A DNA stretch of 64,000 nt from the NCBI GenBank assembly GCA_000708835.1, contig DF236976.1:124001-188000 (forward strand), in the 5' to 3' direction. The position numbers and the translations under genes were made by a program. The notes under the pieces were generated by a model, which had not been told where the DNA came from, did not search any database, and worked only from the letters and a program-made list of their open reading frames with translations. Below are positions 6,292 to 22,119 of the stretch, in pieces (position 1 is the stretch's first letter; each line of letters opens with the position of its first letter). This DNA is from Klebsormidium nitens (lineage: Eukaryota; Plantae; Klebsormidiophyceae).

Positions 6292-8544
6292 CTACGTCTC
6301 TGAGCCAGGCGGCTTTAGATTGCATGCGGCGGGAACAACGATCACCGGCACGCTGAGATTGTGCACAAAGTATTCGCTTACGCTGCCCAGAAGAAGCCTG
6401 CAACGAGAAAGCTCGAAAGTAAAGCACGATCCAGGGCGCTCAGAGTATTCATGTTAGAGATCTTACGGTGTCAATGTCTCCGCTCCCTTTCACGGAATCT
6501 CAGGTTTCATTTGACAAGAAGCGCATTCCGACCCGCTCGACGCTGCGACTTTCAAATCAAAGCAGATGCGGGATGTTCAAGACCAAAGATTGCGGGGTGA
6601 TTAAAGCAAGTCCGGTGAGCTCGAACTCCTGGCGGGGTAACGTACAAAAGAGCGAGCTTTCGGACCTCGCTTAGGACGTGTTGATAAGATGGCAAGGTTG
6701 AGACGTCTACAAATTCTTCTCGCATACTCGGAAATTCTGAAAGTGCACCTCGCTCCCTGTAATGGCCTCGCTTGGAAGAATATTATCTATGCACGTTGCT
6801 GCGGTTCCATCAGGATGTCACGTACACGATTTGCCGAAGCCCGCCAAAAGCACGGAACTGTAGACAACGAGATTTCCCAGGTTCCTCTTCTCCAGACTGG
6901 ATTCCCGCCATTCTAGCTCCTCAGAAGTCAGCCTCTCCTCCGCTCGGCACCCGTCGCTGCTGTCGAGATACTTCCTCATCGTTGGCATGACGTGGCAATC
7001 ACGAAGGAGGTTCAACATTTTTGAGGTATTTGAGTACTCGACCACGCAAAACAGTTGCGAAACGCGGTTCCTACCTGTCCACTTTGCTCATTCCGCGGCT
7101 GCCCACAACCACAACGTCCACCGGCTGCTCGGCGATGAACTTGGGGATTGCCCACCCGGGGTCGCCCGAAAGTACCGTGGTTTGGCACGGAACCTGAGAT
7201 AAAAAGCGGTTTGTTGGGCGACCAGGCAAACACAGCTGGTCGAATCTCTGAAGGTGCAAGTGCAGCTTCCAGTCAACGCGTGCTGTTGCCAACCAGTAGC
7301 GTTATTCAAAGAAGCAAACAATGGACTTTGAATCTATTTTCGAAGTTGAGCAAAGATGAATCTCCGCCCCTTGACGTACTCCTGCTAGAGACTCTGCCAA
7401 GATTGACTAACAGACGGAGTCTCGGGCAATGACTGGGCTTAATTCACAAGCTCACCGGGACCTCCTTTGACAGCTCCCCCAGTTTCTGCATTCGGTCGCG
7501 CGACCTGCGCTCCTCCTCCTCGTGGATGACGTCGCCTTGCGACTCGAACAAAGGCACGAGCTCAGCTGCAGAATTGGAAATTGAGATACTCTTTGACGGC
7601 TGTATAGCGCAGCAGAAGGTGACGACGTGGCTGAATGCAAAGCTGTGTCTGCCGTAACTATCTTCGAGGCTGGCAGCCTCTTGCCGAGGTCCAGCGAAGA
7701 GTCTTCTGGTCTTGCAGAAAAGCTGATTGAGAGGGGGGTAAAAGTGCGATGTCGTTGCCCTTTCTACCTGGGTTACGGCCTGATCGTTTCCTAAGGAGCT
7801 CTCTCCCTTTGCTTTGCTTCAGAGGCGACACTGCGCCTGTTCACTTTCCAAACGTTTCGGCATAGTGCCGATGATGGCTCGACCTTATTGTATGTTGCTT
7901 CGAGGGATCGGACAAATCCTCATTGTGGAGTCCTCGACCTTTGAACGTACCGATGAGGGAAGCTCATCAGGTTGACACTGCAGCTTGAAACATAGCTCTG
8001 TTTTTTAGAACCAGCAGTCAGATCCACTTGGATCGAAGCAGCAAACTAAAGCATTCTGATAAGGTAGGATCTGCTAATGTGATGTCCTGTAAATGGTCGA
8101 CTGTAATGCCTGAAACTAAGCAGTATCTCGTGTGTATTGTGGGCACTTCTGCTACGTCTGAAAAATAAAAGACCGGACACTCCTAAATGCCTTCGCCATG
8201 AGGGCCCAAAACATAGTAGTTGCCAGAGGTTTTATCTACATAAGCTTGACGGAATGGAGCGGAAAGGAGCGGAATGGAACGGAAGTTAGCGCACGGTTGC
8301 ACGGCTTGCAAGCCGTGACGAGGACGACGCTGTCCCCGCGCTCCCGAACCACCAGCTTCTCGACAAGGAACTTGAGCCCATTCATTGACCCGTCAGAGCC
8401 GTCGATCGCGCACAGCAGCCGCACCCCGCGGCCGGCTTCCGCGGCCGGGGTTTCGAGAGGGTTGTGCGCCGGGGGTTGGGGATAGTCGTGCGCCGCTCCA
8501 AAGGGTGCTGCGCTGCTTTGCGTCCCCTCGGAGCTAGCGGCCAT
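6292..8544 (-). CDS. Universal stress protein A-like (USP), copy 1, 4 exons
   Basis: Exon 1 8544-8295 (MAASSEG...RLLCAIDGSDGSMNGLKFLVEKLVVRERGDSVVLVTAC). Exon 2 ~7565-7456 (PELVPLFESQGDVIHEEEERRSRDRMQKLGELSKEVP). Exon 3 ~7194-7073 (VPCQTTVLSGDPGWAIPKFIAEQPVDVVVVGSRGMSKVD). Exon 4 ~6397-6292 (LLLGSVSEYFVHNLSVPVIVVP...ET*). The ATP-binding USP motif G-2x-G-9x-GS is present. Confidence 0.92.
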
Positions 8545-9795
8545 GATGTGGAAAAGACCAAAAAAGATTGGGGCCACTTCCAAGGGGAAATCAGCTGGGG
8601 CAAGCTGACCGCCTTTTCTTTCACCGGGAGCGACGACAAAAGAGCTGCGTGCAATGAGATTCAAACTTATAGCGTGGCCTTCGGAGAGCCAGGCTCTCAA
8701 ATTGACGATTCCCTCACGATTAGTCGAAGTTCCTGCCTGATGAGGAGGAGAATTGGGAGGGGAATTATAAGCTTGTAGCTCGAAATTGCACAACCATTGC
8801 GCCCTATACTGTACCCCGCTGTGAGTTGTACGCGTTTCCTCGCCTTGCTGCGCCATAGCGTCGTAGTTTACGGGACCGCCCCTTCCCCTTTCGCGAATCT
8901 GAGCCAGATCCGGTTTGAGCGCGGCGCCACGTCAGCAGATCTATAGGAAACCGGGTAATACGCGCCTCGCTTCGAGCTGGTTTGCATTAGTTGGACTCCA
9001 AGATAGAGCACCATCGGACTCTCTGCGCTTCTCGTGCGAAGTCAAAGAGCGGTTACAGCGGGCGTTTCCGAAATCGGTGCATGCCGGTTATAAAAGCGGC
9101 ATTCCTCAGGCGGAGACGCTCATTAATCTCGGTCCAGCAGTGGGCGTGTCAGCCAGTAGCCTTTCGTAACCCACTGCTTCGCTGAAAACGGAGCCTCGTG
9201 CGCGCCAAATATGAAGGGATTTAAACCAGCAGGTACTACTCATCATATCTTATAATAAGCTATGTTTTTATCAACTCAGCTTCGTAATTTAGGCGAGCGC
9301 CGTCCTTTGGCATTCTAAAGCTGATCATGAGCACTACTCGGAGCAGCTGGTGTCACGTGCGCCGGGCTGCAATCGAATCAAGATGAATGCATGGGCCATG
9401 GATGCAGAACTGAACCTCGGGCTAAAATTCAAGGAGAAATCCATGAAAAACGCGACTGATCTTATTGATTTTAGTTACGTAGATCGCCAGACAGGATTTA
9501 TAGGACTCACTCCTCTTCACTTGACACGATTTGAAGCCACCTGTTCTATTCTGACATCAAAAACACCGAGACAGGCAGACCAATCTATGTACATCAGCCT
9601 TTCGCCTAGGCCGCAGCTATGTTTGTATTTCAAACATGGCTCGCAGGCTTGAGGTCGTCCTAGCCGTCATTGCCTTCCAATGTGAAGTCATCTCGAAACT
9701 TGGGACCCCCCTTTCCTGACAACACTTATTCAACCAAGGGCTCCTTTGTAATTCACACGTGACTCGTCGGGCTAAGCTCCCCCGCCAGACCAGAA

Positions 9796-12061
9796 TCACG
9801 GCTTCGCACGCGGAGGGGAGACCACCAGTACCGGCACGCTGAGATGGTGCACCAAATGGCTGCTCACGCTGCCGAGAAACAGCCTGCAAATGGGGGGCTG
9901 GTTATGCTAGAGACAGCGTCCCCCCACCTTTGAAATGATGCATCAGCAAGTTCATCTGGTTTTTCTGAACCCCTGGGACGAAGCTGAGTGGGACGTTCAA
10001 TGTTCAACCAAATACCGTGCAGAAAGGTCCGACGTAAGACAGGTGCGAGGCAGAGAGTCAAGCTGCAGCTACCTGTGACAAGCGCAGATACGAAAGGAGA
10101 AAGGAGTTGGAAGCAAAAGAGCAATCGAAGCCTCTGGAACGGCAAACAAGGGCTTCGAAGGTACCAGAGCATTGAGCAAGCTCTGCGAGAGTCTTGTCGT
10201 CATCACCGATTTCAAAAAAATGCACGTGAAACAGCAGATAGCAAAAAATGTGTGGTGGAAGGGCCTTGCTTGCGAGGATCTTCTGCGAAGATGACTGTTC
10301 CGAGATGTCTCGTCAGCTGAAAAAGATGCGGGGTTTGTTGGCAAAGCCTATTGAATCGAAGCGCGTTAAATACTGGGCAATCGACATTCTTCTTCCATAC
10401 TTCGATTTCTTCCGTGCATCATCCATAGTACCCTCTGAGCCTTCAAAAACATCGTCGATCGGATTGGCAGCATTGTCGTCGAAGAGCTGATAGAAGCGGG
10501 ATTAGTTCTAGATTTCCGCTCCGAAACAATCACCGAGATTTGTACCTTTGCATCGGGCCCAATCCGCGACTGCCAACTGCCACAATCTCCACCGGGTGCT
10601 CCGAGATGAACTTGGGGATAACCTCACGCGGGTCGCCCGTAGCAACCACAACTTCGCAGGGCACCTGCAGCAAGAAGCGCTCGGTTGGGTGACCACGTAC
10701 GTCCTCAGGAAATGGCCAGTATGAGGAGGCGTTTGAAGCCAAATTTCCAGCAAATCGGGGGACCCAGGTTCGACCCGTAAGGACGAAGAAAGTCTAGCAA
10801 CCGGAATCATTGCGTCGCGGCCAAAAGATGGTCACAACCAAGGGCGATAATGCAGCATCGAACAGACAAGTTGATTCCATGTTACAAAGCGAAGGAGCAC
10901 TGGCCAGCCTAAGACGTTCATCAGCTGAGAGTTGGTGTCTATGCTTCTAATCAAATGGATAGGTCGATGGACCTCGGAGTAAGCGCAGACGTCATCTACA
11001 AGGCTCACCATTACGATTGCGTCAGAATTCAGCTTCAGTGAGGCAAGTCTTCGAAGTAGCAAGGCCTCAAATCTACGGAAGTTCTAGTCGAGCAGAAGTA
11101 GCTCGCGGGGTGTTCACACCGTCGAGCTCACATTGATTGCACTCGCCAGCTCTCCCAATTTTTGCAGCTGCTGGCGGCTTCGGCGTTCCTCCTCTTCCTG
11201 GACCATCTTGCGTTGCAGGTCGTTGATGAAAATGAGGTCAGCTGCGGAGAAATTAAGAGGCACGATTTATTTTGCAGCATCGCCCACGTGGCTCAAAGAG
11301 TGAGTTCAAACTGTGTAGCCCTTTCAAAGCTGTAGCTGGTAGCATCTCTGATTCATGTAGGACGTACTTTTGTGAAAGTAAAAGTCAAAACCCGTTCTCT
11401 TGATTTCGTGTGGTTGAAGGTCAAAGCGTCGACTTGTTTCTCCAACGTTCGAATATCAAACCGGCTTTGATTGGAACCATCAACGTTTCTAGAAAAGAGG
11501 ACATTGAGCATAAAGTTTCAGAGTTCTGGATAGTACAATATGACCCATTTTTCCATGTTCCAAAGTGTGCTGGCCTCTTCAGTACTCAATGCTCAGAAAG
11601 GCTGCTCCTGTAAGCAGGCACGGACCCTCGTTCAGTGCTTCAACTCCTCGCTATTTTGCCAAAGGAATATAAAGGGCTGGATTTGAACCCCGCAAGAAAT
11701 TGTTTCTTTGTTTCTCCAACAGTTTCGAAGCACACTGAGGGCAAACATGTGCAAAGTGCACTCAAACACGATTGAAGAGATTCGGCGGCAAGAACGCACG
11801 ATAGAATCGGGATTCCGGTTCCATGGGCTCACGGCTGAGCTGCTTGCACGCCTCAAATAGGACGATGCTATCTCCCCGCTCCGCAACAACCATCTTCTCA
11901 AGAAGAAACTTGAAAGCAGCCTTGGAACCTTCAGAACCGTCAATCGCGCACAAGAATCGCTGCCCACTAGCCGGGTGCGGCTGCTCTGGGGTTTGGACAG
12001 GTGGCGACTTCGCCGCCTCCGGCTCTTGTTCTTTGTGGGCGCTGATACCAGCGTCAGCCAT
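9796..12061 (-). CDS. Universal stress protein A-like (USP), copy 2, 4 exons
   Basis: Exon 1 12061-11833 (MADAGISAH...RFLCAIDGSEGSKAAFKFLLEKMVVAERGDSIVLFEAC). Exon 2 ~11242-11133 (PDLIFINDLQRKMVQEEEERRSRQQLQKLGELASAIN). Exon 3 ~10664-10543 (VPCEVVVATGDPREVIPKFISEHPVEIVAVGSRGLGPMQ). Exon 4 ~9883-9796 (LFLGSVSSHLVHHLSVPVLVVSPPRAKP*). Intron positions match copy 1. Confidence 0.92.
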
Positions 12062-13332
12062 GATGGCTCCTGCAAGCAATATGTACTCCTCAATGGAGCC
12101 AGCTGGACGTGGCACCGGGAATCCGTATCAGTCGTCTCTAACCGTTGCTCTAGCTTCTTACCGGACAGCTACTGTGCAGCAAGCGGGGAACATTCAGCAC
12201 GTCCAGCATTCGAAGCTCAATGAAGAAACCTTTTGCGGTGCTCGAGATCCTCGAAGTGACAAAACCCGGGACGAGCAGAAACCATTGTTCCGGCCTGAGT
12301 AACAGACTCATTGTCTCAGAGCCTCAGAGTCTCAGAGCCACTGGTTCAGAACATGGAACCAGTAAACTGCATGATGATGCGGACTCGGGTGGTTGAAGCG
12401 TTCAGGCTGACCTGTGTGCTATGCTGCCACGTCGGACTGGACTCGGTCAATATGTCATGATCGAAAGGGACTTCACCGCAGCTGGTTTGCAGGTGCACCG
12501 TTGACCGGGTCGTCCGGATCGCGGTCGCGAAACCCCCCCCCTAGTCAATACGTCGAACGCCGATCTCCCAGCACCGGCGGGGTTTGCATGAAAATCCAGC
12601 TAAGTTAAGATACCTTTATGCATCCTGGTTTGCTCGCTCGTTTCGCGGCTGCATCGTTTTTCCTTAACACAGTGTTCAGCTCTCGAACGATCCTTCCAAC
12701 CCTGTTCTGTGCATGATGCTTATTGAGTTGACATGCCTATATCGGCGATGATCACGATCCGAATTTGGAATATTCAAAGCGGCTGTATGTGTTCATGAGA
12801 ACTCAACATCTCTTTGGCTTGTACGGAAAAGAAATTCTCCAAAACCCGACCAGCACCCCATGCTGCCAGGAGAAGTAACAACCAGTGTTGCAGCATCGGG
12901 CTGTCATCGGGGCTGGACATGGCATGAAAGAAGCAGCGTGTGTTTTTTCATTTTAGCTTACAGATTCCCGACGGCCACATGAGTGACATCATCTTGAAAG
13001 AATGGTTCTACTCAGTCGACTTTTCTCTGTATGGTGGGGCAAGAGTGCTGTGACTGCGTTGCAGGCAATGAAGAAAAACCTTCATCGGCAATCTGGCAGA
13101 CGTGCTCGGCAGCCACAACTTCAAATATGCACAGGCCAATGGTGAATTAGAACACATTATCGTACCGCAACGCAGATTCAGTATCAAATCGAGCTTGACA
13201 AGTTCAAGAACTTCTATGATTGCGCTATCAAAATCTGGCTTCACGTCGGCTCTTCGACCTGTAACACTACTTCCACAGCAACTGGTATAGTACATGTCAA
13301 CACGCTTTCAACCCAACTCGTCTGTTACAACT

Positions 13333-16300
13333 TTACAAGCTCACAAGCGCGGGCACCTCCTTGGGAAGGTCCTTCTCCGCGCGCGCGATGGTCTCCTTCA
13401 GATCCAACCCGAGAGACTCGGCCAGCCTCTCCCCTAGGCTCTTATCCACCCGGTAGTAGTGGTACAGGTTCAGCTGCTGGATCTTCTTGGGGACCGGGTC
13501 GGATTTACACCCGGCGCCCTTGCCCTTGGTCATGGTGTTAGTGATGCCGGTGATAACGCGCTCCTGCTCGTCCGGCTTCATTATGTGCCAAAGAGCGGTC
13601 GCCTGCGGGAAGCGAGTAAATGGTCAACCTTGAAGTGAGCAATTTCACAAAGACCTGCGTCTCTTTGGAGATTTCATATAAAGCTAAACACACATGATAA
13701 GCAGCGGAGGGCGCTCTTGTAGTGAGCGGCGAAGTTTTTGAAAAGCAGAATCCAGGGGACGCAGCAAAAAATCAACGACAATCCCGGCCTTCACTCGGCA
13801 CGCTGAATGACGGAAAGGAAGTAGGAACTACGTCGTCACATTGGGAGTGCTGTGTTGGATTGGAGCGCTTCAGTCGGATGACTCGAGAGGGACCAGTCCG
13901 CGTGGCGACCGAGCGAAGGATCCGGACAGACTCCAGCATCGCAACCAAGGTTCCTGCAACAAAAGCGGACGTCCGTACCTGCGAGTAGTCGTCCGAATCC
14001 GCCCGGTGGTTGTACCGCTTGCCCTCGCCGCTCATCTGCAGGGGCACGGCCGGGTCCACGTACCGGGCGTCCTCGGCGGGGCCGCCGAAGCTGTTGGGCT
14101 CGTACGGGGGGCCGGCCTGCAAAACAAAAACGGGGAAAATCAATGCCAGATCCAGGACAAGATACGCTGTCAACTCTGGTTTTTCGAAGGCCAATATCTA
14201 GTGATAGATTGGTGCTCCATCATGGTATGAGATATTTCGAGAAATATTTTAGGAAGTCGCCGCTTCGCCTGCAAAACCAATGGAGCTAGCGATCGTGTGA
14301 CTAACGAACGAACCTGTCGACCGAGAACCCAGCTCGGAGGATCTTCATTTGTTGAGAAAAGTAGGCGTGCAATGGGTGACTCGAATTGCTTTCCTGCCTT
14401 GCATAAGTCCCGCATGGCCGGTTGTGAGTGCGAGGTAACCGCACACGAACAGTTTTCCTCCTTACGCATTCCCTTAGTGAATAGCGGCAAGCAGAAACCG
14501 ACGGCGCAGAGCCACGTGGTAGATCCAAGCATGTCCGTTACTGATACGATTAGAGACAGCGGAGTCTTTCTCCAGTTGCAGAAAACCCGACTGCAAACTG
14601 CCAAGTGCTGAAGCCTGCTACTACAGGCCCGGTTTTGTTGCTTTGATCAACTCGGACCAGGAACAGAACATGTATGAATTCTTACCCCGTTTTGCGTCTG
14701 CATGAAGCCGTCTGAGTGGTAGTTGAACACCGGGCACCGGGGCTTGTTCACCGGCTGCAAGGAAAACCCTAAATACTCAGGAACTGTGAAGTCGTAGCTG
14801 GGGAAAATAATCTTGGGACACTTTGTCCTTCTACAAGTTTAAGAACCGGTCAGGATACCAAACGGAGCATTTTGAAGTAGGTAAGTGAGCGCAGACTCAC
14901 GTGGGATACGAAGAAGTTGGGCTTGTGTACATCACACGAACGACCGTTGTAAAAGCCGAGAAAGCGCCCGCAGAAAGATCATGGAACGCTGCTCCGAAGT
15001 ATGCCTTCAATGCGAGGAGACGCAGCTTTTCTCCAAAACGAGGTCCCAAAAAGGTCGAACAAACACTTAAACAGAGACTGAAAGGCGGAACGTGCGCACC
15101 AGTTGCTCGTGGTTGATGCCCAGCCTGTAGACTGCCGCGTCCTTGTACGAGAAAAGACGCGCCTGCACAAAGCGCGGTGGAAAAGAGTTGAGTAGGCTAG
15201 CTTTTTCTTCTCTTAGACGCGGTAAAGTTGTGGCGGTATCTCCCACGCAACTTGCTATAGAAGTCTTGGAAGAATTCTGAAACGCGAGACAGCATCCTGG
15301 TGAAATTTTTCTTGATGCTAGCTGGACTTCTTGTAAACGACGAAGCCAAGGTGCGAAACTAGCTTGCGGGAGCGTCTGCCCGACGCCTGTTTGTAGCCTT
15401 CCAATCAGATGATATACCATTGGCCCCTTCAAAACATATCGAAACCTCAATTTCAACCGCTAACCCGGTCCTGGAAGCCTGCTGCTGACCACGGCTCATT
15501 TCACAGAAATCGCATAAAGAAGGACGGCTCGATTTTGGCGAGCTTCAGATAACGAGGCAGACAACGATGAAGGAAACCGAGAAAGGACGAAACAGATAAA
15601 GAAGGAAACAAAGCCGTTTCTTCACCTGCAGCATGCGGTCGGGGGAGTAGCCGATGCCGGGCACGACGTTGGCGGGGGCGAACGAGGCCTGCTCCACGTC
15701 CTGGAAGTAGTTCACCGGGTTGCGGTCGAAGTGCAGCTCGCCCACCTGCAGTAGAAATATGTGAGTCTGATGTATTGTCTTGGCTGCGCATCAAGCCTTT
15801 CGTGTGCCTGGTAACTCGAACTGACGGGCTCCTTGCGTTACCACTCCGGGCCGACGGACACAGCGCGCGCGGATGAGCAGGGAAAGGCGCTAAAGGAGCG
15901 CTTTCAATCGCTGCAAGGAGGCTGATGAAGGCCACGAAGACGCTGTTTGAAGTTTGACGCTGTTCGACAGGTTTCCCACCATGCCAAAGTGCACACTTTT
16001 GGGCACATCCCGCAACGTCCAGCTATACGTCATATGAAATCTTGCTGGCGGCGGACTCTTTCCTGCGAGGTTAATCTTCTGTCGATGATAGTGCAATTGC
16101 CAACGCAGGTTCCTGACCTCCTGCTCAGCTTCCGTCACAAAGCTCAAACACGTCTCTCGAAGTAATGGGCCTCTTTCGAGCGTACCTCGTGCAGCGGGAA
16201 CTCCTTGTGTGGCCAAATCTTGGTAAGGTCAAACGGATCGTAGGGCACCTCGTCGGCCTGCTTGTCCGTCATCACCTGGATGAACATCTTCCACTTGGGC

Positions 16301-19300
16301 CCGTTGCCGTTCTGGATGTTCTGCAGCGCAAAGAAGACAAAGTCCGTCAACACGTCTGCGACCAATGATTGCGTGGGTACTTTACTTGCGCTTTCCAATC
16401 TCGCTCAGCATCGACCCTGATCGTGCGTCTTTCTCGTACCGTCCCCTAAAGCGCGTCTCTGCCGCGCTTTCACGCCTGGATGGCTTGGCGTTTCTAACTT
16501 GCATACATGTAACAGAGCTCCTCGTTGTGCCGCGCTACTGATCTGTAAATTGATAAAAGCCCTGCGCCCATGTGCCCTGTACCGCTTGCACGACTATCTT
16601 TTCGATGCATTTTCCAGTATCCCACAGCTGGACCCTTACGGGATAGCACTACTTGGCCGCCACCTCGACTATATCGTATCAATCGCTAGCACTCCCGAGG
16701 GCTACCTCAGATGTTCCGGACGTCCCCATGGTGTTACTGGCTAGCACTTGCGTGGACTACCTCACAATTTTCGGACGTCCTCACCGTGAACAAGTCCTCG
16801 TTGAACAGGTCCGGGTTCTCTCCGGACAGCGCAATCCCTTCCTCGTCAGTATACGACTCGTTGCCCTGCTCCGACTTCATATGGAACTTGCACCAAACCC
16901 GCTCGTTGTTATCGTTAACCAGTGAAAACGTGTGGCTGCCGTAGCCGTTCATGTGCCGGTACGACTTGGGCAGACCCCGATCGCCCATCAGCCATAGCAC
17001 CTGCAAACGAGCGCGGTTAAATGCTTAACCTTCGGATTTAGCGTTGACCCTGAATGTCACGCTACCCGTCAGGGCCCTCGTTCGATACTGATGCGTGTCC
17101 AGCGCTTTCCAGGCTCGTGGACGCTGACAGACGCCGAATCAGAGAAATATTTTCAAAATGGAGACCGTTTGTCCAGTCCTAGCGTCTACGCTGCTTTTCG
17201 ATCTGTAAATTAGCCTCCCGATCCACATTCTGATCACGGTCGAGAAAGCTACAATGTCCCACACGATGCTTGATATCAGCCGTGTACGGATCCGCGGAAG
17301 ACTACTGGTCGACCACCCGACCATTTTGAGCAGTCTGCCTCTATCTACGCAAGCCAACAACCCCGAGACGGGCAACTTCGGGCTCCGACCAGCATTGGCA
17401 GGAAGTGAGCAAGCGTCAGTCCTTCCGTAATCAGCTCTTTGGCAACTCCTTTCCTAATCGAATGGCTGAGAGCCGTCCTACTTCCCCTCGTCTAGTCACA
17501 CGATTTTACTAGTAGAGGCCGCCAAACTTCAGAAAGGTAGACAAACCAGAGCACTAGGGATCCGACAGTATTCCAACGGCTATGAAGACAGAAGTGAGGA
17601 GATAATCAACGATGGAGAAAACTGAGGAGCCGGAAAAAGAAGCTCGACCAGTACCTGGTGGGTGGCTTCGGGCGAGTGGCCCCAAAAATCCCAGCGCATG
17701 GTCCAGGAGCGCAGGCCGCGCACATCACGCTTCTGAGAGTGGATCAGGTCGGGGAACTTCAGGGGGTCCCTGTAGAAGTCGTGAGACTGTTAAGTGCTGC
17801 TAGGCAGACATGGCACCAATGATTGCTCACCTCAGAATTTCAAGCAGCTGGGGCTTACCGGAACAGCCGTTTACAGACTTTACTCGCATTACAGCGTTCC
17901 GTCCTTGAGATCTTGCACAGAAAAGGCACGTGGGTTCGATAGAAAAGACCGAATTGTCTCATTGGTTATCTCCGCACATGTGGTTTTGGTCCATGTCCCA
18001 ACAAGCGGCTAAACAAAAAGGGTCGAGTTACCATAGCCGTAAAGAAAAGCACAGATTCAATGCGTTGAAAGACGTCAAGAAGCATTCTACGAAAGTTTGT
18101 TCTCAGACCATTGTAAGGCTTGGAGATCATGAGCAAGCTCACCTGATGAAGAAGATGGGCGTGTTGTTGCCAACAAGATCCCAGTTACCCTCGTCCGTGT
18201 AGAACTTGACCGCAAACCCGCGAGGATCGCGCACCGAGTCTGCTGACCCATGCTCGCCCGCAACAACGCTCCACCGCGCAAAGATCTCGGTCTTCTTGCC
18301 AATCCTGTCGAACAGCTGTATAGAAACAGGATCCGGTTTAGAAATCGAATGAATGGGCGCAACTTTTCGCAGCAGATACCAAGACAGGCAAACGGGCCGC
18401 ATTCCACAGTTATCGTTTCCAGCTTCTCGAGGTGCAGGGGATAGTATAAGAGCGAACTATAGGACGTGGAGCAGTGCTTTCAAATCTTCCAATCATCAAG
18501 CCAATCAACACAGACGATGCAATATCAATTCAGAGATATACTTGCAATGAAATAAACTGCTTCGACTTCAAGCTTCCCTCACCTTTGCCTTTGTGTACTT
18601 CGAGATGTCCTTTGTGACGGTGAAGGTGCCGAAAGCACCGGCACCCTTCTCGTGCACTGACCGGGGCGGGATGCGCTCCCGGTTGAAATGGACCTGTTGG
18701 TTGCAAATCAGCCGTTTTGACCAGATGCCTTCACAGTAATAACAAAGAGGAATTGGCTGAAAGCATCCAACAGAGGACACAGCTAGACATGCATAACCAG
18801 TATAGGAAACAAGGGAGTCCCTAAAGAGTCTGATCGTACTTGTCATTTCAGGCCTTTCTGGACTAGAAACCGACCCAAGCAAAAACAGTCCCTCTAAAAG
18901 AACCCATATGAGACAAATTTGAAGAGCTGCATCGATCAACCTCCATATGTAAGGCCCCTCACATTCTTCTCATACAGATGGAAGTCCTCGGCCAAGAGCA
19001 GGGGTCCCCTCCTGCCCGCAGTGATGCTGTTTGTGTTGTCCCCAACAGGCTTGCCAGACGCAGTTGTGAGCGTCTCCTTTGGCTTGATATAGTGCTCTCC
19101 CGGCTTTCCATTCCCATTGAAGAGCCCTGCCCTCGGGGCCTGCTGGCGAGCCTCCCGCCTGAGCTGTGCGCAGCCTTGACACGCTGCTGACAAGAGGATG
19201 ATGTCAGCATAGAACTCCTGAGGATCAGGGCACCACTTACAAGGAAGGGAATTCCAGGAGGACGTGATTTGGTCTTCAAAGTGTCAGGATAGGATGCCAA

Positions 19301-19879
19301 AGCTCAGCCAGCAGATGAACAAGGGCCTTTAAGAGGTTATCTCGAACGATCCACTTTCACGTCAGAGCAGATGCCTGGTGACATAATCACTCTGACACTT
19401 TGGCATTGAACGGCGGTTTCTCCCATCAGTAAGGGGGTGCCCATATTTCATTGTTCAAAGATTAAGCATACTGTCTAGCAGAAAGTATCCTTTGACGCAA
19501 AGGACCAGAGGCCCCTTACATGCATTACAATCAAAGCAGATTGCTGGGGAGCTGCATGCATACATTGGCTTCAATTCACAGGAGATGGGAGCTCTTTGCC
19601 AGGATCCTTTGGATGGTGCCCCGGACCCCCCAAGAAAAGTGGCTGGTAGAACAGGGTAGCAAGTTGCTTAAGCTCTCTAATCAAGATGCAGCCATCGTTC
19701 CACGCAGTACTCATGGCCGCTCTGTGCAAGACAGAACCAATGGGAGAAAGAGACCCACCTGGCGGGGCTGCAAAAGCGGTGCCGGTCAGAAACTGCTTGT
19801 TATCCTGCACCCTTTGGAATATTGATTGTCCTTGAAGCCCCTTTTCTGCCACGCGAGACGCCATTGCTGAGGAGGCCAT
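13333..19879 (-). CDS. CAT: Monofunctional heme catalase, clade-3 (bacterial KatA-like), 12 exons, with N-terminal targeting extension
   Basis: Spliced motifs: [26 protein letters not shown]; [20 protein letters not shown] (distal His); [50 protein letters not shown]; [18 protein letters not shown]; [10 protein letters not shown]; [31 protein letters not shown] (proximal Tyr); [25 protein letters not shown]; YEPNSFGGP; ends ...ALVSL-TAA at 13333. Exon 1 (19879-19759) is inferred from a phase-1 donor that matches the phase-1 acceptor at 19187. The catalase core is certain; the 5' exon is less so. Confidence 0.95.
19128..19879 (-). other. Putative chloroplast transit peptide of the catalase (about 60 aa, split by intron 19758-19187)
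   Basis: Spliced N-terminus [60 protein letters not shown]|GLFNGNG. It starts MAS, is Ala/Ser/Gln/Arg rich with few acidic residues, and ends in an Arg-rich xRA cleavage-like site. Exon 2 has no in-frame ATG before the catalytic core, so an upstream exon is required. Confidence 0.65.
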
Positions 19880-20892
19880 ACAAATGTTTAGATCCGTTTG
19901 CTTCGCAAATCCACCTCCTTGCCTGGGACAATGCAGTTGCTAATAAGGTCCCTTCTCAAGTATTGAGCACGATTAGGCTTCCAATTCAAGAGCTCCTGCT
20001 TGGCGCTGCAGCCTGTGGAAAGTGGGACGATCGCTGATTTTTGTCACGACCTAATCAGGAATGAGAGTCTGGACTTTGCAAAGTGCAAACGGTACCTCTG
20101 GTATTCGGACTCCTCCTCGGCACGTCTCTTGCGCTGGCCAACTTGTTCAGCTTCTCGAGCTTCAGTAGGTCCTAGCTTTGCTACGTCTCTGCCATTATCG
20201 ACGTCGACTGCACTCGAGCTCGGGGAGGTTCAAACTGCCGGAACGTCGGGGGATCCCGCCGGAGGATTCACAAGGTGGTCGGAAGGAGCCACTTGGCAGC
20301 CCGGACGTTCGAACCCCATCCAGAATCTGTGCGATTTGGAACCGGGGTTCTGGGGTGCGTACCGAATCACTTGAGATAACTTGGCATCAGACTTGGACCA
20401 GTACGTACCTCGACCGCTCGGGCTTTTGCACTTTCCACGTGTATGAAGATCGGGCCTGCAGATACGAGTGCATGCAGTGGATCATAATATCATGTGAACC
20501 ATGTGGCAGTTATACCAATTCAAAGACGACAGGTGTTTCAAGAGGAGGCTTGCATGGCGGACAGTTGGCAGCCGATGAACTCCCGCTGACTCGGACAAAA
20601 CAGTACTGAAGTTTTTCACACGCTGTTGTGTGATGACAACAACCCTGCTATTTACTTTGAGTGTGAATAAGCTCGCAGATCAACCCACGGCACAGCTGGC
20701 AAATAGCGCGACTGCCGCCACAGTCATCACTGATCTGTGATATCACTTTACTGCGCAGCCACGGAAGATAAAAGGAGAGCAGATGCACGAACAAGACATT
20801 CATTTCAAGCAGCTTCCATTCAGCAAATTCAAGCTCTCTCACCGCTCAAAACAGCCACCTTTCTCTCCGTCACCAAACACCAACCAGCAATC
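19880..20892. promoter_or_regulatory. Divergent (bidirectional) intergenic region shared by catalase and the LEA-like gene; contains G-box CACGTG at 20436-20441
   Basis: Head-to-head ATGs at 19879 (-) and 20893 (+); the CACGTG is read directly from the sequence. Confidence 0.5.
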
Positions 20893-22119
20893 ATGCCTCT
20901 GGGTTCAGCTGAGCAGCAGGCCAAGGGTGAGTCCACCCAGAAGTCGGCCGAGGCCGAGAGGGGCACCAAGGACTTCAAGACCAACGTGCAGGAGACTGTG
21001 AGTTGCTAAGACTCAAGCACCGCACCGAAACTGTCTGACGTTTGCAAGTGTTCTGTGCAATTTGTAAGAGCTGCAGGTTAGCAAATGAGGGAGGGTTTGA
21101 AATGGAAGATAGCTGTGTCATTCCTTTGGAGTGAAGGGGAAAACTGGGAGTTAAGAGTATTGCCGGTCAGCTATCCTACCTGTATACTGACGTGTGACAA
21201 GATTGACATCTACTTTTGAAGTTGGATGTTCGGCTAGTTTCCTATCTCAGAAGTGCAGGCATTTTGCAAGCTAGATTGGGGGTAAAATGCCAGGGTGCCA
21301 ATTGTCAGATGGGATACTCAAAGCCGGGCTAAAATGTCTAGAGGCCTTTGCGTTGTGCTTTTGCAGTGTGGCATTGGCACGTCATGAGGCAGCCATTCCC
21401 TACGGAGTTCTCTTTTGCTTCTTGGAGAATCAGTAACGTTGTTGTCTTCTTATGATTGTACTCAATTCTACAAATGCAGTTTGAGAAGGCCAAGGCCAAC
21501 GTCCAGGCCGTCGGTGACAAGATCATGCACCCCTCCGACCAGGGCAGGGCAGCTGCTGATGCCGAGAAGGATGCCAAGAAGGCTCAGGTTGGGGCTCAGG
21601 CTGGGGTGAGGAATGAAACGGGTCCTCTTTCTATTCAGTTTGTCCAGCCCAATGCAGGGAATTGCAGAGTGCTCAGGACATAAATGGTAGAGTTGGGCAT
21701 CACTTTTTGGAATGGCGGAAACAAGAGCAGGTCATGAAACTGGCTAGTAATATTGAAACAAGTGCACTGCTTCCAAGTTTTCAAACACAGCAAATGGAAG
21801 TGGGTGAAATCTCTGCTGTAACAAATACAGCAACGAACGAGCGTCTTTTTGAACCCTAGAATGCGACAATGTGTCGTACCAGACAAAGCCTTTGATTGCA
21901 GTGTACTACTTTGCTTCCTACTAATCCTAGGTTTTGCCCTTGGCGATCTGCCGATAAGAAAGCTGAGGAAGCTGAGGAGTTTTTGGCATTCAAAAGATAG
22001 AATGTGCGTCTGACCAGTATACACTTGTGGATGTGCAGGCAGAGAGGACTGGACATCAAGCTGAGGAGACTGGCGAGAAGGCCAAGGGTTTCTTCCAGAA
22101 GAACAACCCCCTCGCATAA
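20893..22119 (+). CDS. Small LEA/hydrophilin-like protein (about 97 aa, 3 exons)
   Basis: Exons 20893-20997, 21480-21587 and 22039-22119 give MPLGSAEQQAKGESTQKSAEAERGTKDFKTNVQETFEKAKANVQAVGDKIMHPSDQGRAAADAEKDAKKAQAERTGHQAEETGEKAKGFFQKNNPLA*. It is rich in A/K/E/Q/G, has no Cys or Trp, and has AKEK/TAE-like helical repeats typical of group-3 LEA proteins. Confidence 0.75.

Follow-up and report, generated by a model that had tools for sequence, protein, structure and literature searches.

A transcribed clade-3 haem catalase of Klebsormidium nitens with a fast-evolving N-terminal extension and a likely organellar destination

A window of 64,000 nucleotides from Klebsormidium nitens (contig DF236976.1, positions 124,001 to 188,000; coordinates below are counted from its first letter) holds an expressed gene of 12 exons on the minus strand (19879..13333). 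It codes for a haem catalase of 583 amino acids with an N-terminal extension that is real and evolves rapidly in the part contributed by exon 1. The sequence points to an organelle as the likely destination. The reading that we favor, with a probability of about 0.4, is that of a clade-3 catalase of bacterial descent, furnished by exon 1 with a presequence and most likely destined for the plastid stroma. To our knowledge, the textbook view has chloroplasts without catalase and dependent on ascorbate peroxidase and peroxiredoxins.

The open reading frame runs from an ATG at 19879 to a stop at 13335-13333, and every intron is bounded by GT and AG (Table 1). Spliced RNA contigs (4 runs from 4 studies) contain each of the nine joints that link exons 1 to 10; at 14685 a loose contig end continues with the first letters of exon 11, and the joins of exons 10, 11 and 12 are given by colinearity with an intronless orthologue (L002). 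An earlier note on this DNA had the ATG, the stop, the strand and the exons right but set the acceptor of exon 2 three nucleotides too early: the RNA skips 19184-19758, so that exon 2 starts at 19183 and not 19186, and intron 1 measures 575 nt rather than 572. As splicing takes place at the second of the two AGs in CAGCAG, the protein has one Ala fewer, reads ...AAPPACQGC... and is 583 residues long. The splice itself, from 19759 to 19183, is seen in RNA contigs from all four runs, and exon 2 indeed lacks an in-frame ATG, the open frame 19283-18939 containing no Met at all. The transcript extends to at least 20208, and we take 19879 as the start because an in-frame TAA precedes it and there is no other sizeable upstream ORF. 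No Met was found between residues 6 and 233, and there is therefore no shorter AUG-initiated isoform, at the resolution of contigs, beyond whose reach rare isoforms or minor first exons would lie.

Table 1. Features of the catalase gene, in window coordinates.
Feature	Position	Strand	Description and evidence
5' UTR	19880..20208	-	329 nt or longer, continuous with exon 1; RNA contigs in four runs reach 20124-20208
5' UTR uORF	ATG at 20195	-	4 codons, the single one in a scan of upstream ATGs
5' UTR in-frame stop TAA	19891-19889	-	upstream translation
Exon 1, coding part	19759..19879	-	Met1 to first base of codon 41; presequence-like, fast-evolving residues 1-40
Intron 1	19184..19758	-	575 nt, GT..AG, phase 1, CAGCAG tandem acceptor; joint in 4/4 runs
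Exon 2	18963..19183	-	conserved A-C-x-G-C and a 13-residue stretch, 10-residue linker, start of the catalase N-terminal arm (12 residues)
CxGC motif (Cys42-Gln-Gly-Cys45)	19170..19181	-	CQGC in the window, CYGC in L001, CHGC in L002
Exon 3	18583..18693	-	distal His in RSVHEKG
Exon 4	18143..18315	-	RWSVV; distal Asn in VGNNTP
Exon 5	17655..17769	-	ends with THQ, NADPH-site His
Exon 6	16785..17000	-	NADPH-site Arg, Asn, His, Lys; aligned to human catalase 1f4j
Exon 7	16186..16320	-	W-P-H
Exon 8	15626..15745	-	Pfam match and RNA joint
Exon 9	15100..15162	-	proximal Tyr in RLFSY
Exon 10	14686..14754	-	joint 14754/15100; loose end 14685 reads into exon 11
Exon 11	13979..14116	-	loose-end letters at 14685; colinear with cDNA L002
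Exon 12, coding part and stop	13333..13602	-	Catalase-rel PF06628; C-terminal tail ending VSL; colinear with L002

The gene corresponds to kfl00027_0240 (kfl00027_0240_v1.1), or Kf_CatX3, of Klebsormidium flaccidum (nitens), which has the same length of 583 residues and the same N-terminus; our RNA-supported model is identical to it across the approximately 400 residues of Table S1 in PMC9158360 (BMC Genomics 2022;23:411). That study assigns Kf_CatX3 to an alpha group that corresponds to clade 3, puts all five K. flaccidum catalases in this single group and discusses lateral transfer. Both the gene model and the clade-3 placement are thus already published, and the earlier note overstated the novelty. 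For Kf_CatX3, PMC9158360 mentions neither targeting nor the N-terminal extension nor the absence of a PTS1; since the enzyme and its clade are published, the remaining value lies in the subcellular localisation only.

By its sequence, the gene encodes a small-subunit haem catalase of clade 3. The Pfam Catalase domain (PF00199) matches colinearly on exons 2-8 over positions 1-325 of the 383 in its profile, and Catalase-rel (PF06628) is matched by exon 12. The motifs of the catalytic His, the Asn and the proximal Tyr are all present: R.VHEKG, VGNNTP and RLFSY start at residues 125, 199 and 406 and match invariant columns of the bacterial homologues. In database searches the spliced 583-residue protein was represented by the intronless orthologue (L002:380-2122, 87% identical). 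The bacterial-type identity claimed at the outset is borne out among solved structures, the catalase of Proteus mirabilis coming first with 574 bits, ahead of the human enzyme (516), CatF of clade 1 (366) and HPII of clade 2 (359); along with P. mirabilis (PDB 1m85/2cag), KatA of Pseudomonas aeruginosa (4e37) is the best solved relative, the two covering the whole core at 565-576 bits. Arabidopsis CAT2 and Chlamydomonas CAT1 share the family and the reaction but belong to clade 1, the clade of the CatF-type structures. The NADPH site, previously described as retained, is kept at seven of eight positions relative to human catalase (His194, Arg203, Asn213, His235, Lys237 and Trp303/His305), the exception being Ser201, which is a Gly. 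The product would be an active small-subunit clade 3 enzyme with predicted NADPH binding. Bacterial clade-3 catalases share the catalytic and NADPH-site residues of the algal enzyme, and bacterial relatives reach 56-61% identity; the alga differs from them in its approximately 73 extra N-terminal residues, a 10-residue lineage-specific insert in the C-terminal Catalase-rel domain encoded by exon 12, a 20-residue C-terminal tail, 11 introns and unusual substitutions in a ten-residue stretch near the haem, where the bacteria have IPERVVHAKG.

The phylogenetic evidence places this catalase, on present trees, inside the bacterial clade-3 radiation, with no single donor singled out. The top matches among 5.8 billion proteins are bacterial (56-61% identity), and a search of genome contigs with an alignment as query returned 80 named bacterial loci, as against none with a single-protein query. 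Sister groups were unstable in quick trees, one of which, with two long animal-like rows, did not reject an animal grouping (AU p 0.69). They gave way to a careful tree, which includes 13 animal catalases: in it the alga falls in a clade with four bacterial rows (support 98/85), itself within a bacterial clade with 100/99 support, and AU tests reject a clade with the animal catalases (p 0.006) as well as a grouping with cyanobacteria (p 0.018). The horizontal acquisition proposed earlier is supported in part: the nesting within bacteria and the rejection of both alternatives speak for it, whereas the trees set bacterial transfer against animals and cyanobacteria only and are without fungal, protist or plant alpha-type clade-3 sequences. 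The description of the gene as intronised stands, with 11 introns and RNA contigs that attest to its expression. On this basis the catalase core would have been inherited from a bacterial gene that then gained 11 spliceosomal introns.

In the alignment the bacterial homologues start about 70 residues after the algal protein, which gives the latter an extension of about 73 residues. That this extension is genuine, as the earlier note held, is confirmed by an exon 1 that is joined in RNA and has no bacterial counterpart; a protein database search returned no homologue of residues 1-76. Its two parts evolve under different constraints. Exon 1 (residues 1-40) changes at about 8 times the rate of the core, with 50% amino acid identity to the orthologue against 91% and a dN of 0.44 against 0.055, in a sample of two effective taxa (K. 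nitens and one relative, the orthologous sequences L001 and L002 being 95% alike in DNA). The genomic orthologue L001 was reached through a protein search with exon 6 (match P0001; the other matches were mostly frameshifted bacterial fragments). The ATG, frame and intron phase of exon 1 are kept in L001 and L002, in the genomic L001 intron 1 agrees in position and phase, the Met-Ala-Ser-Ser start is retained and the length is within two codons of the orthologue. The break in conservation falls at residue 40/41, the boundary of exons 1 and 2. Residues 41-76, including the CxGC motif, are as constrained as the enzyme core; exon 2 is 86-92% identical to the orthologue, and the Pfam Catalase match begins at its residue 40. 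A mature start near GLFNG, as once suggested, is not supported by this pattern, in which the shift lies at residue 40/41 and not at residue 60. The AlphaFold2 model (13-row alignment, mean pLDDT 49.8) is too poor to describe the extension.

We infer cleavage, import and a compartment for the catalase along the following lines. Every copy of the protein would start at Met1 and carry the approximately 73 residues absent from the bacterial homologues; residues 1 to about 40, encoded by the separate exon 1, would act as a cleavable organellar presequence, while residues 41-76 would probably persist after maturation and lengthen the N-terminal arm of the enzyme. The protein would most likely go to the stroma of the plastid, perhaps as one of two destinations (dual targeting), and in the plastid the enzyme would clear H2O2 without spending ascorbate or thioredoxin-derived reductant. 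An N-terminus that is uncharged, rich in Ser/Thr and of low hydrophobic moment resembles a chloroplast transit peptide. Residues 1-20 of the orthologue have zero charge and 35-40% Ser/Thr, and hydrophobic moments are low, at 0.3-0.47. The window protein is less transit-peptide-like than the orthologue, with Arg9, Glu12, Lys13 and 20% Ser/Thr in residues 1-20, and with two acidic residues, the Arg at 9 and 15% Ser/Thr in residues 1-40. Taken together, the composition of these N-termini speaks mildly for a transit peptide of the plastid type rather than for a mitochondrial presequence. We discarded a signal peptide for want of a hydrophobic core. Haem catalase is sensitive to light, and the general view, as far as we know, is that chloroplasts lack it; literature searches found no report of a plastid or mitochondrial localisation of catalase in Klebsormidium, moss or liverwort.

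A purely mitochondrial destination, to which the presequence would take the catalase for the removal of respiratory H2O2, is rather unlikely; such a role is reported for some other catalases. The net charge of +2 over residues 1-40 and of +5 over residues 1-62, together with a 12-residue Arg-rich stretch and the peak hydrophobic moment of 0.47 at window residues 6-24, would suit such an import route; the paralogue Kf_CatX5, moreover, has a distinct presequence-like N-terminus, and two paralogues could serve two organelles. However, residues 1-20 of the orthologue carry no positive charge and have a moment of 0.30-0.42, which is unusual for a mitochondrial presequence, and the Arg-rich stretch sits in the conserved residues 41-62, outside the fast-evolving part.

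We consider it similarly improbable that the enzyme is cytosolic, its extension being a disordered or regulatory tail that plays no role in targeting. Residues 41-76, which contain the CxGC motif, are constrained like the core, so that half of the extension or more is no disposable presequence; the two acidic residues in exon 1 of the window agree with such a tail, and Kf_CatX1 too has a low-complexity N-terminal tail. Against this, exon 1 keeps its start, frame and length while changing 8 times faster than the core, as targeting peptides usually do, and its segment is without any homologue in the protein database.

With regard to peroxisomes, the earlier note was right that a canonical PTS1 is missing. 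The protein ends in ...EVPALVSL, the C-terminal tripeptides of the window and orthologous proteins (VSL, VNV and VNA) do not match a PTS1, and QKL is absent from the last 40 residues. This absence is weak evidence because plant catalases enter peroxisomes without a canonical PTS1, as stated in a preprint (bioRxiv 10.64898/2026.10.10.758186). Land-plant and chlorophyte clade-1 catalases, of 492 residues and without an N-terminal extension, reach peroxisomes by means of a non-canonical signal that is C-terminal or internal. Plant PTS2 presequences are cleaved next to a Cys, which the conserved Cys of the alga loosely recalls. Import by a non-canonical signal, internal or C-terminal, by piggy-back with another catalase subunit or through a degenerate PTS2 cleaved at this Cys is nevertheless the least probable of these routes: although [RK]-V-x4-Q-F-L occurs at residues 22-31 in both orthologues, together with a conserved Cys close to residue 40-42, the last three residues vary per orthologue with none PTS1-like, a permissive PTS2 pattern ([RK][LVIQTMA]x5[HQ][LAIF]) gave zero matches in the first 80 residues of the three sequences, and Kf_CatX1/2, of the eukaryote-type clade-3, are better candidates for the peroxisomal enzyme. 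A PTS2 reading of the conserved [RK]-V-x4-Q-F-L with the Cys near residue 42 was rejected, its spacing being one residue short.

Relatives with comparable architectures are found in Table S1 of PMC9158360. Kf_CatX5 shares the core signature of Kf_CatX3 and has a longer, Ser-rich and acid-free N-terminus; these two have the bacterial signature FG[TK]FTVT, as against HGYFEVT in CatX1/2/4 and the bryophyte members. Pp_CatX4 (Pp3c19_6540), Pp_CatX5 and Mp_CatX1 are clade-3 enzymes from early-diverging streptophytes which, like Kf_CatX3, have N-terminal extensions, in their case of 80-110 Ser/Thr-rich residues; unlike Kf_CatX3, they are of the eukaryote-like HGYFEVT subtype, and no alignment can be made between their extensions and that of the alga. 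In the literature found, these moss and liverwort catalases are peroxisomal or cytosolic by assumption. Pp3c19_6540 responds to ABA and dehydration with strong induction, and the catalase gene of the window is likewise among stress genes.

Beyond a stromal destination for this one protein, we tentatively consider, as a possibility less probable than that destination, that Kf_CatX3 is a natural haem catalase of the plastid, brought into the stroma by the exon 1 presequence and kept by early-diverging streptophytes as a reductant-independent H2O2 sink in desiccation or high light, with Kf_CatX5 and the long-N-terminus bryophyte enzymes likewise organellar and lost before seed plants. Far more speculative is the idea that the CxGC at the mature N-terminus might be a thiol switch linking activity to the redox state of the plastid. 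Designs that place catalase in the chloroplast are used in the engineering of photorespiratory bypasses, and the algal enzyme, if indeed stromal, would be a natural template for them. Should this streptophyte catalase prove to be plastid-targeted or mitochondrial, the handling of organellar H2O2 in the ancestors of land plants would need a new picture, with presequence-bearing relatives in moss and liverwort.

The window's catalase gene, kfl00027_0240, is listed as kfl00027_0240_v1.1 or Kf_CatX3 of Klebsormidium flaccidum (583 aa) in Table S1 of PMC9158360 (BMC Genomics 2022;23:411), and the tabulated protein is identical to our RNA-supported model over the approximately 400 residues compared. 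That study places all five K. flaccidum catalase genes in the alpha group, i.e. clade 3, and discusses lateral transfer; targeting, PTS1 and transit peptides do not come up in it. With gene, annotation and clade thus already on record, the sole new element is the targeting question. What the earlier note described holds up apart from a 3-nt shift, and its reading of the gene is supported in part.

The introns are uniformly of the GT..AG type and the exon pieces translate as one continuous open frame, with exons 2-8 colinear on the Pfam Catalase profile (positions 1-325 of 383) and exon 12 matching Catalase-rel. RNA evidence came from contigs of four public runs, representing four studies and two organism labels, mapped on 14600-20500; those over the gene are transcript-derived because they are spliced. 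All junctions from exon 1 to exon 10 show clean joints in each of the four runs, and a loose contig end at 14685 continues into exon 11 sequence. The splicing of exon 1 in phase onto exon 2, predicted in the earlier note, is thus present in all four. Of the 19759/19186 junction it had proposed, the exon 1 side held and the exon 2 edge was off by 3 nt, the sole departure from its model: the acceptor is a tandem CAGCAG (NAGNAG), of which the distal (second) AG was chosen in four of four transcript assemblies. This gives a protein of 583 residues with the sequence ...AAPPACQGC...; the proximal AG, as in the earlier model, would insert one Ala in frame.

Further 5', contigs of the four runs extend to 20124-20208 with no further joint, making the presequence-like exon the first one in these assemblies, as anticipated, with the proviso that contig assemblies may miss rare alternative first exons. 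An in-frame TAA and a lone 4-codon uORF leave the ATG of exon 1 as the start. Only the longest contigs reach the uORF (MAET), which sits at their 5' extremity. A protein scan found no Met between residues 6 and 233, so that no shorter AUG-initiated isoform is possible. Separately, contigs from a second catalase transcript cross-map at 16930-16959 and 17728-17759 over 30 nt and then diverge, giving rise to a spurious 768-nt 'joint' bounded by TA..CA; the diverging ends encode ...FKWVNKEGQ and ...TPVFFIRDPS, matching Kf_CatX1/CatX4 (PMC9158360 Table S1).

Coordinates of the catalase gene and its neighbors in the window
Feature	Position	Strand	Remark
Kf_CatX3 gene	19879..13333	minus	12 exons; ATG 19879, stop 13335-13333
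Intron 1 by RNA	19184-19758	minus	575 nt
Exon 2 acceptor	19183-19189	minus	tandem CAGCAG
In-frame TAA	19891-19889	minus	5' of ATG
uORF	20181-20195	minus	single, starts at 20195
Two universal-stress-protein genes	~7070-8860, 10530-12115	minus	downstream of catalase; weak Pfam Usp matches of exon pieces, E 2e-4 to 8e-3
LEA-like ORFs, Lys/Ala/Glu-rich	~20740-21680	plus	divergent from catalase, ~0.5 kb from transcript start 20208; no Pfam match

Two orthologues allow the N-terminal extension to be judged. L001, a 66-kb JGI metagenome contig reached via a fragment match (P0001), carries the gene with matching exon structure, including a GT..AG intron 1 that agrees in position and phase. L002, a 2.4-kb intronless contig found by a pattern scan of JGI contigs that used the exon 2 alignment, has an ORF (380-2122, 581 aa) whose product shares 87% identity with the window protein from end to end; it is colinear with the gene model across all junctions, exons 10-11-12 included. 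As the two are 95% alike in DNA, the comparison is effectively of two taxa. Against twelve bacterial homologues, the algal protein begins about 70 residues earlier, and its C-terminal domain carries an insert of 10 residues and a tail of 20; nothing resembling residues 1-76 was found in the protein database. Between the window and L002, exon 1 (residues 1-40) retains 50% identity (dN 0.44), residues 41-62 retain 86%, residues 63-76 92%, and the catalase core 91% (dN 0.055). This step places the conservation boundary at the exon 1/2 junction, directly followed by a CxGC motif (CQGC, CYGC or CHGC), rather than near GLFNG, where the earlier note had expected processing. Between orthologues, exon 1 keeps its ATG, opens with MASS..MA and stays in frame, and the phase of the following intron is unchanged. 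Exon 1 stands as real and presequence-like.

Uncharged, Ser/Thr-rich starts of low hydrophobic moment are more in keeping with chloroplast transit peptides than with presequences for mitochondria. Residues 1-20 of the orthologue are of this kind (no charge, 35-40% Ser/Thr, low moment); those of the window are less typical (Arg9, Glu12, Lys13; 20% Ser/Thr). Our best single guess is that Kf_CatX3 is predicted to be plastid-targeted, dual targeting included, with a probability of about 0.4. A mitochondrial destination comes next and is unlikely, and we give the same low weight to a cytosolic enzyme. The N-terminus has no hydrophobic core and hence no signal peptide. Peroxisomal location would need non-canonical import and is the least probable. 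As the earlier note had seen for the window protein, there is no PTS1, this protein and its two orthologues ending in VSL, VNV and VNA, and no QKL; nor is there a PTS2 nonapeptide, the conserved [RK]-V-x4-Q-F-L being one residue short.

For ancestry, L002 served as proxy for the window protein in structure and protein-database comparisons. Its best solved structures are all of clade 3 (P. mirabilis 574 bits, P. aeruginosa and Vibrio ~565, H. pylori 529, human 516), as against 366 for CatF (clade 1) and 359 for HPII. Setting aside its contig's own partial protein (the K. nitens proteome is seemingly not in the collection), its best matches among 5.8 billion proteins are bacterial catalases of many phyla at 56-61% identity. 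A higher-scoring 863-aa sturgeon-assembly entry with a vertebrate-type N-terminus was set aside. Two quick trees placed the algal pair within the bacterial radiation on a long stem (0.8-1.0) with unstable sisters; on one quick tree, with only two long animal-like rows, an alga+animal clade was not rejected (AU p 0.69). A careful tree of 59 rows, including metazoan catalases and comprising no fungal, protist or plant alpha-type clade-3 sequences, united the alga with an Aquisalimonadaceae sequence, an Ignavibacteriales MAG, Ca. Thiodiazotropha and one more row (98 ultrafast bootstrap/85 SH-aLRT), nested in a bacterial clade supported at 100/99; grouping with 13 animals (AU p 0.006) or with cyanobacteria (p 0.018) was rejected. 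The earlier 'bacterial-type' label therefore holds. Bacterial ancestry, tested against animals and cyanobacteria, stands as the probable origin, and one from the plastid ancestor is not favored; no particular donor is singled out by the careful or the quick trees. In Table S1 (PMC9158360), the bacterial signature FG[TK]FTVT occurs in Kf_CatX3 and Kf_CatX5, as against HGYFEVT in Kf_CatX1/2/4 and the moss and liverwort clade-3 proteins, which suggests, as a lead, two lineages inside the published alpha group.

The distal His, distal Asn and proximal Tyr motifs are present. Retention of the NADPH site, also noticed earlier, is upheld by alignment with human catalase for seven contacts (His194, Arg203, Asn213, His235, Lys237, Trp303 and His305), Ser201 being the exception, replaced by Gly.

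The catalase is flanked by two universal-stress-protein genes on one side, whose mutual similarity suggests a tandem duplicate, and a LEA-like ORF on the other, with which it possibly shares a stress-responsive promoter region. In L001, DegT/DnrJ/EryC1 aminotransferase fragments (15668-18528) lie 3' of the catalase in place of the universal-stress-protein genes, and local synteny thus differs. Among the paralogues, Kf_CatX4 (kfl00012_0090, 651 aa; PMC9158360 Table S1) has about 150 extra residues ahead of the core and a hydrophobic start (...AVGALAALVGLLLVASIV...); its product could be anchored in a membrane or secreted, and a fused gene model is another possibility. In Kf_CatX5 the core signature is that of Kf_CatX3, and the N-terminus is longer, Ser-rich and devoid of acidic residues over some 50 positions (Table S1). 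Moss Pp_CatX4/5 and liverwort Mp_CatX1 have Ser/Thr-rich N-termini 80-110 residues long (Table S1). ABA induces the moss gene Pp3c19_6540 more than 1000-fold; where its product resides is assumed in the literature. The targeting question for Kf_CatX3 thereby extends to one paralogue and to bryophyte relatives.
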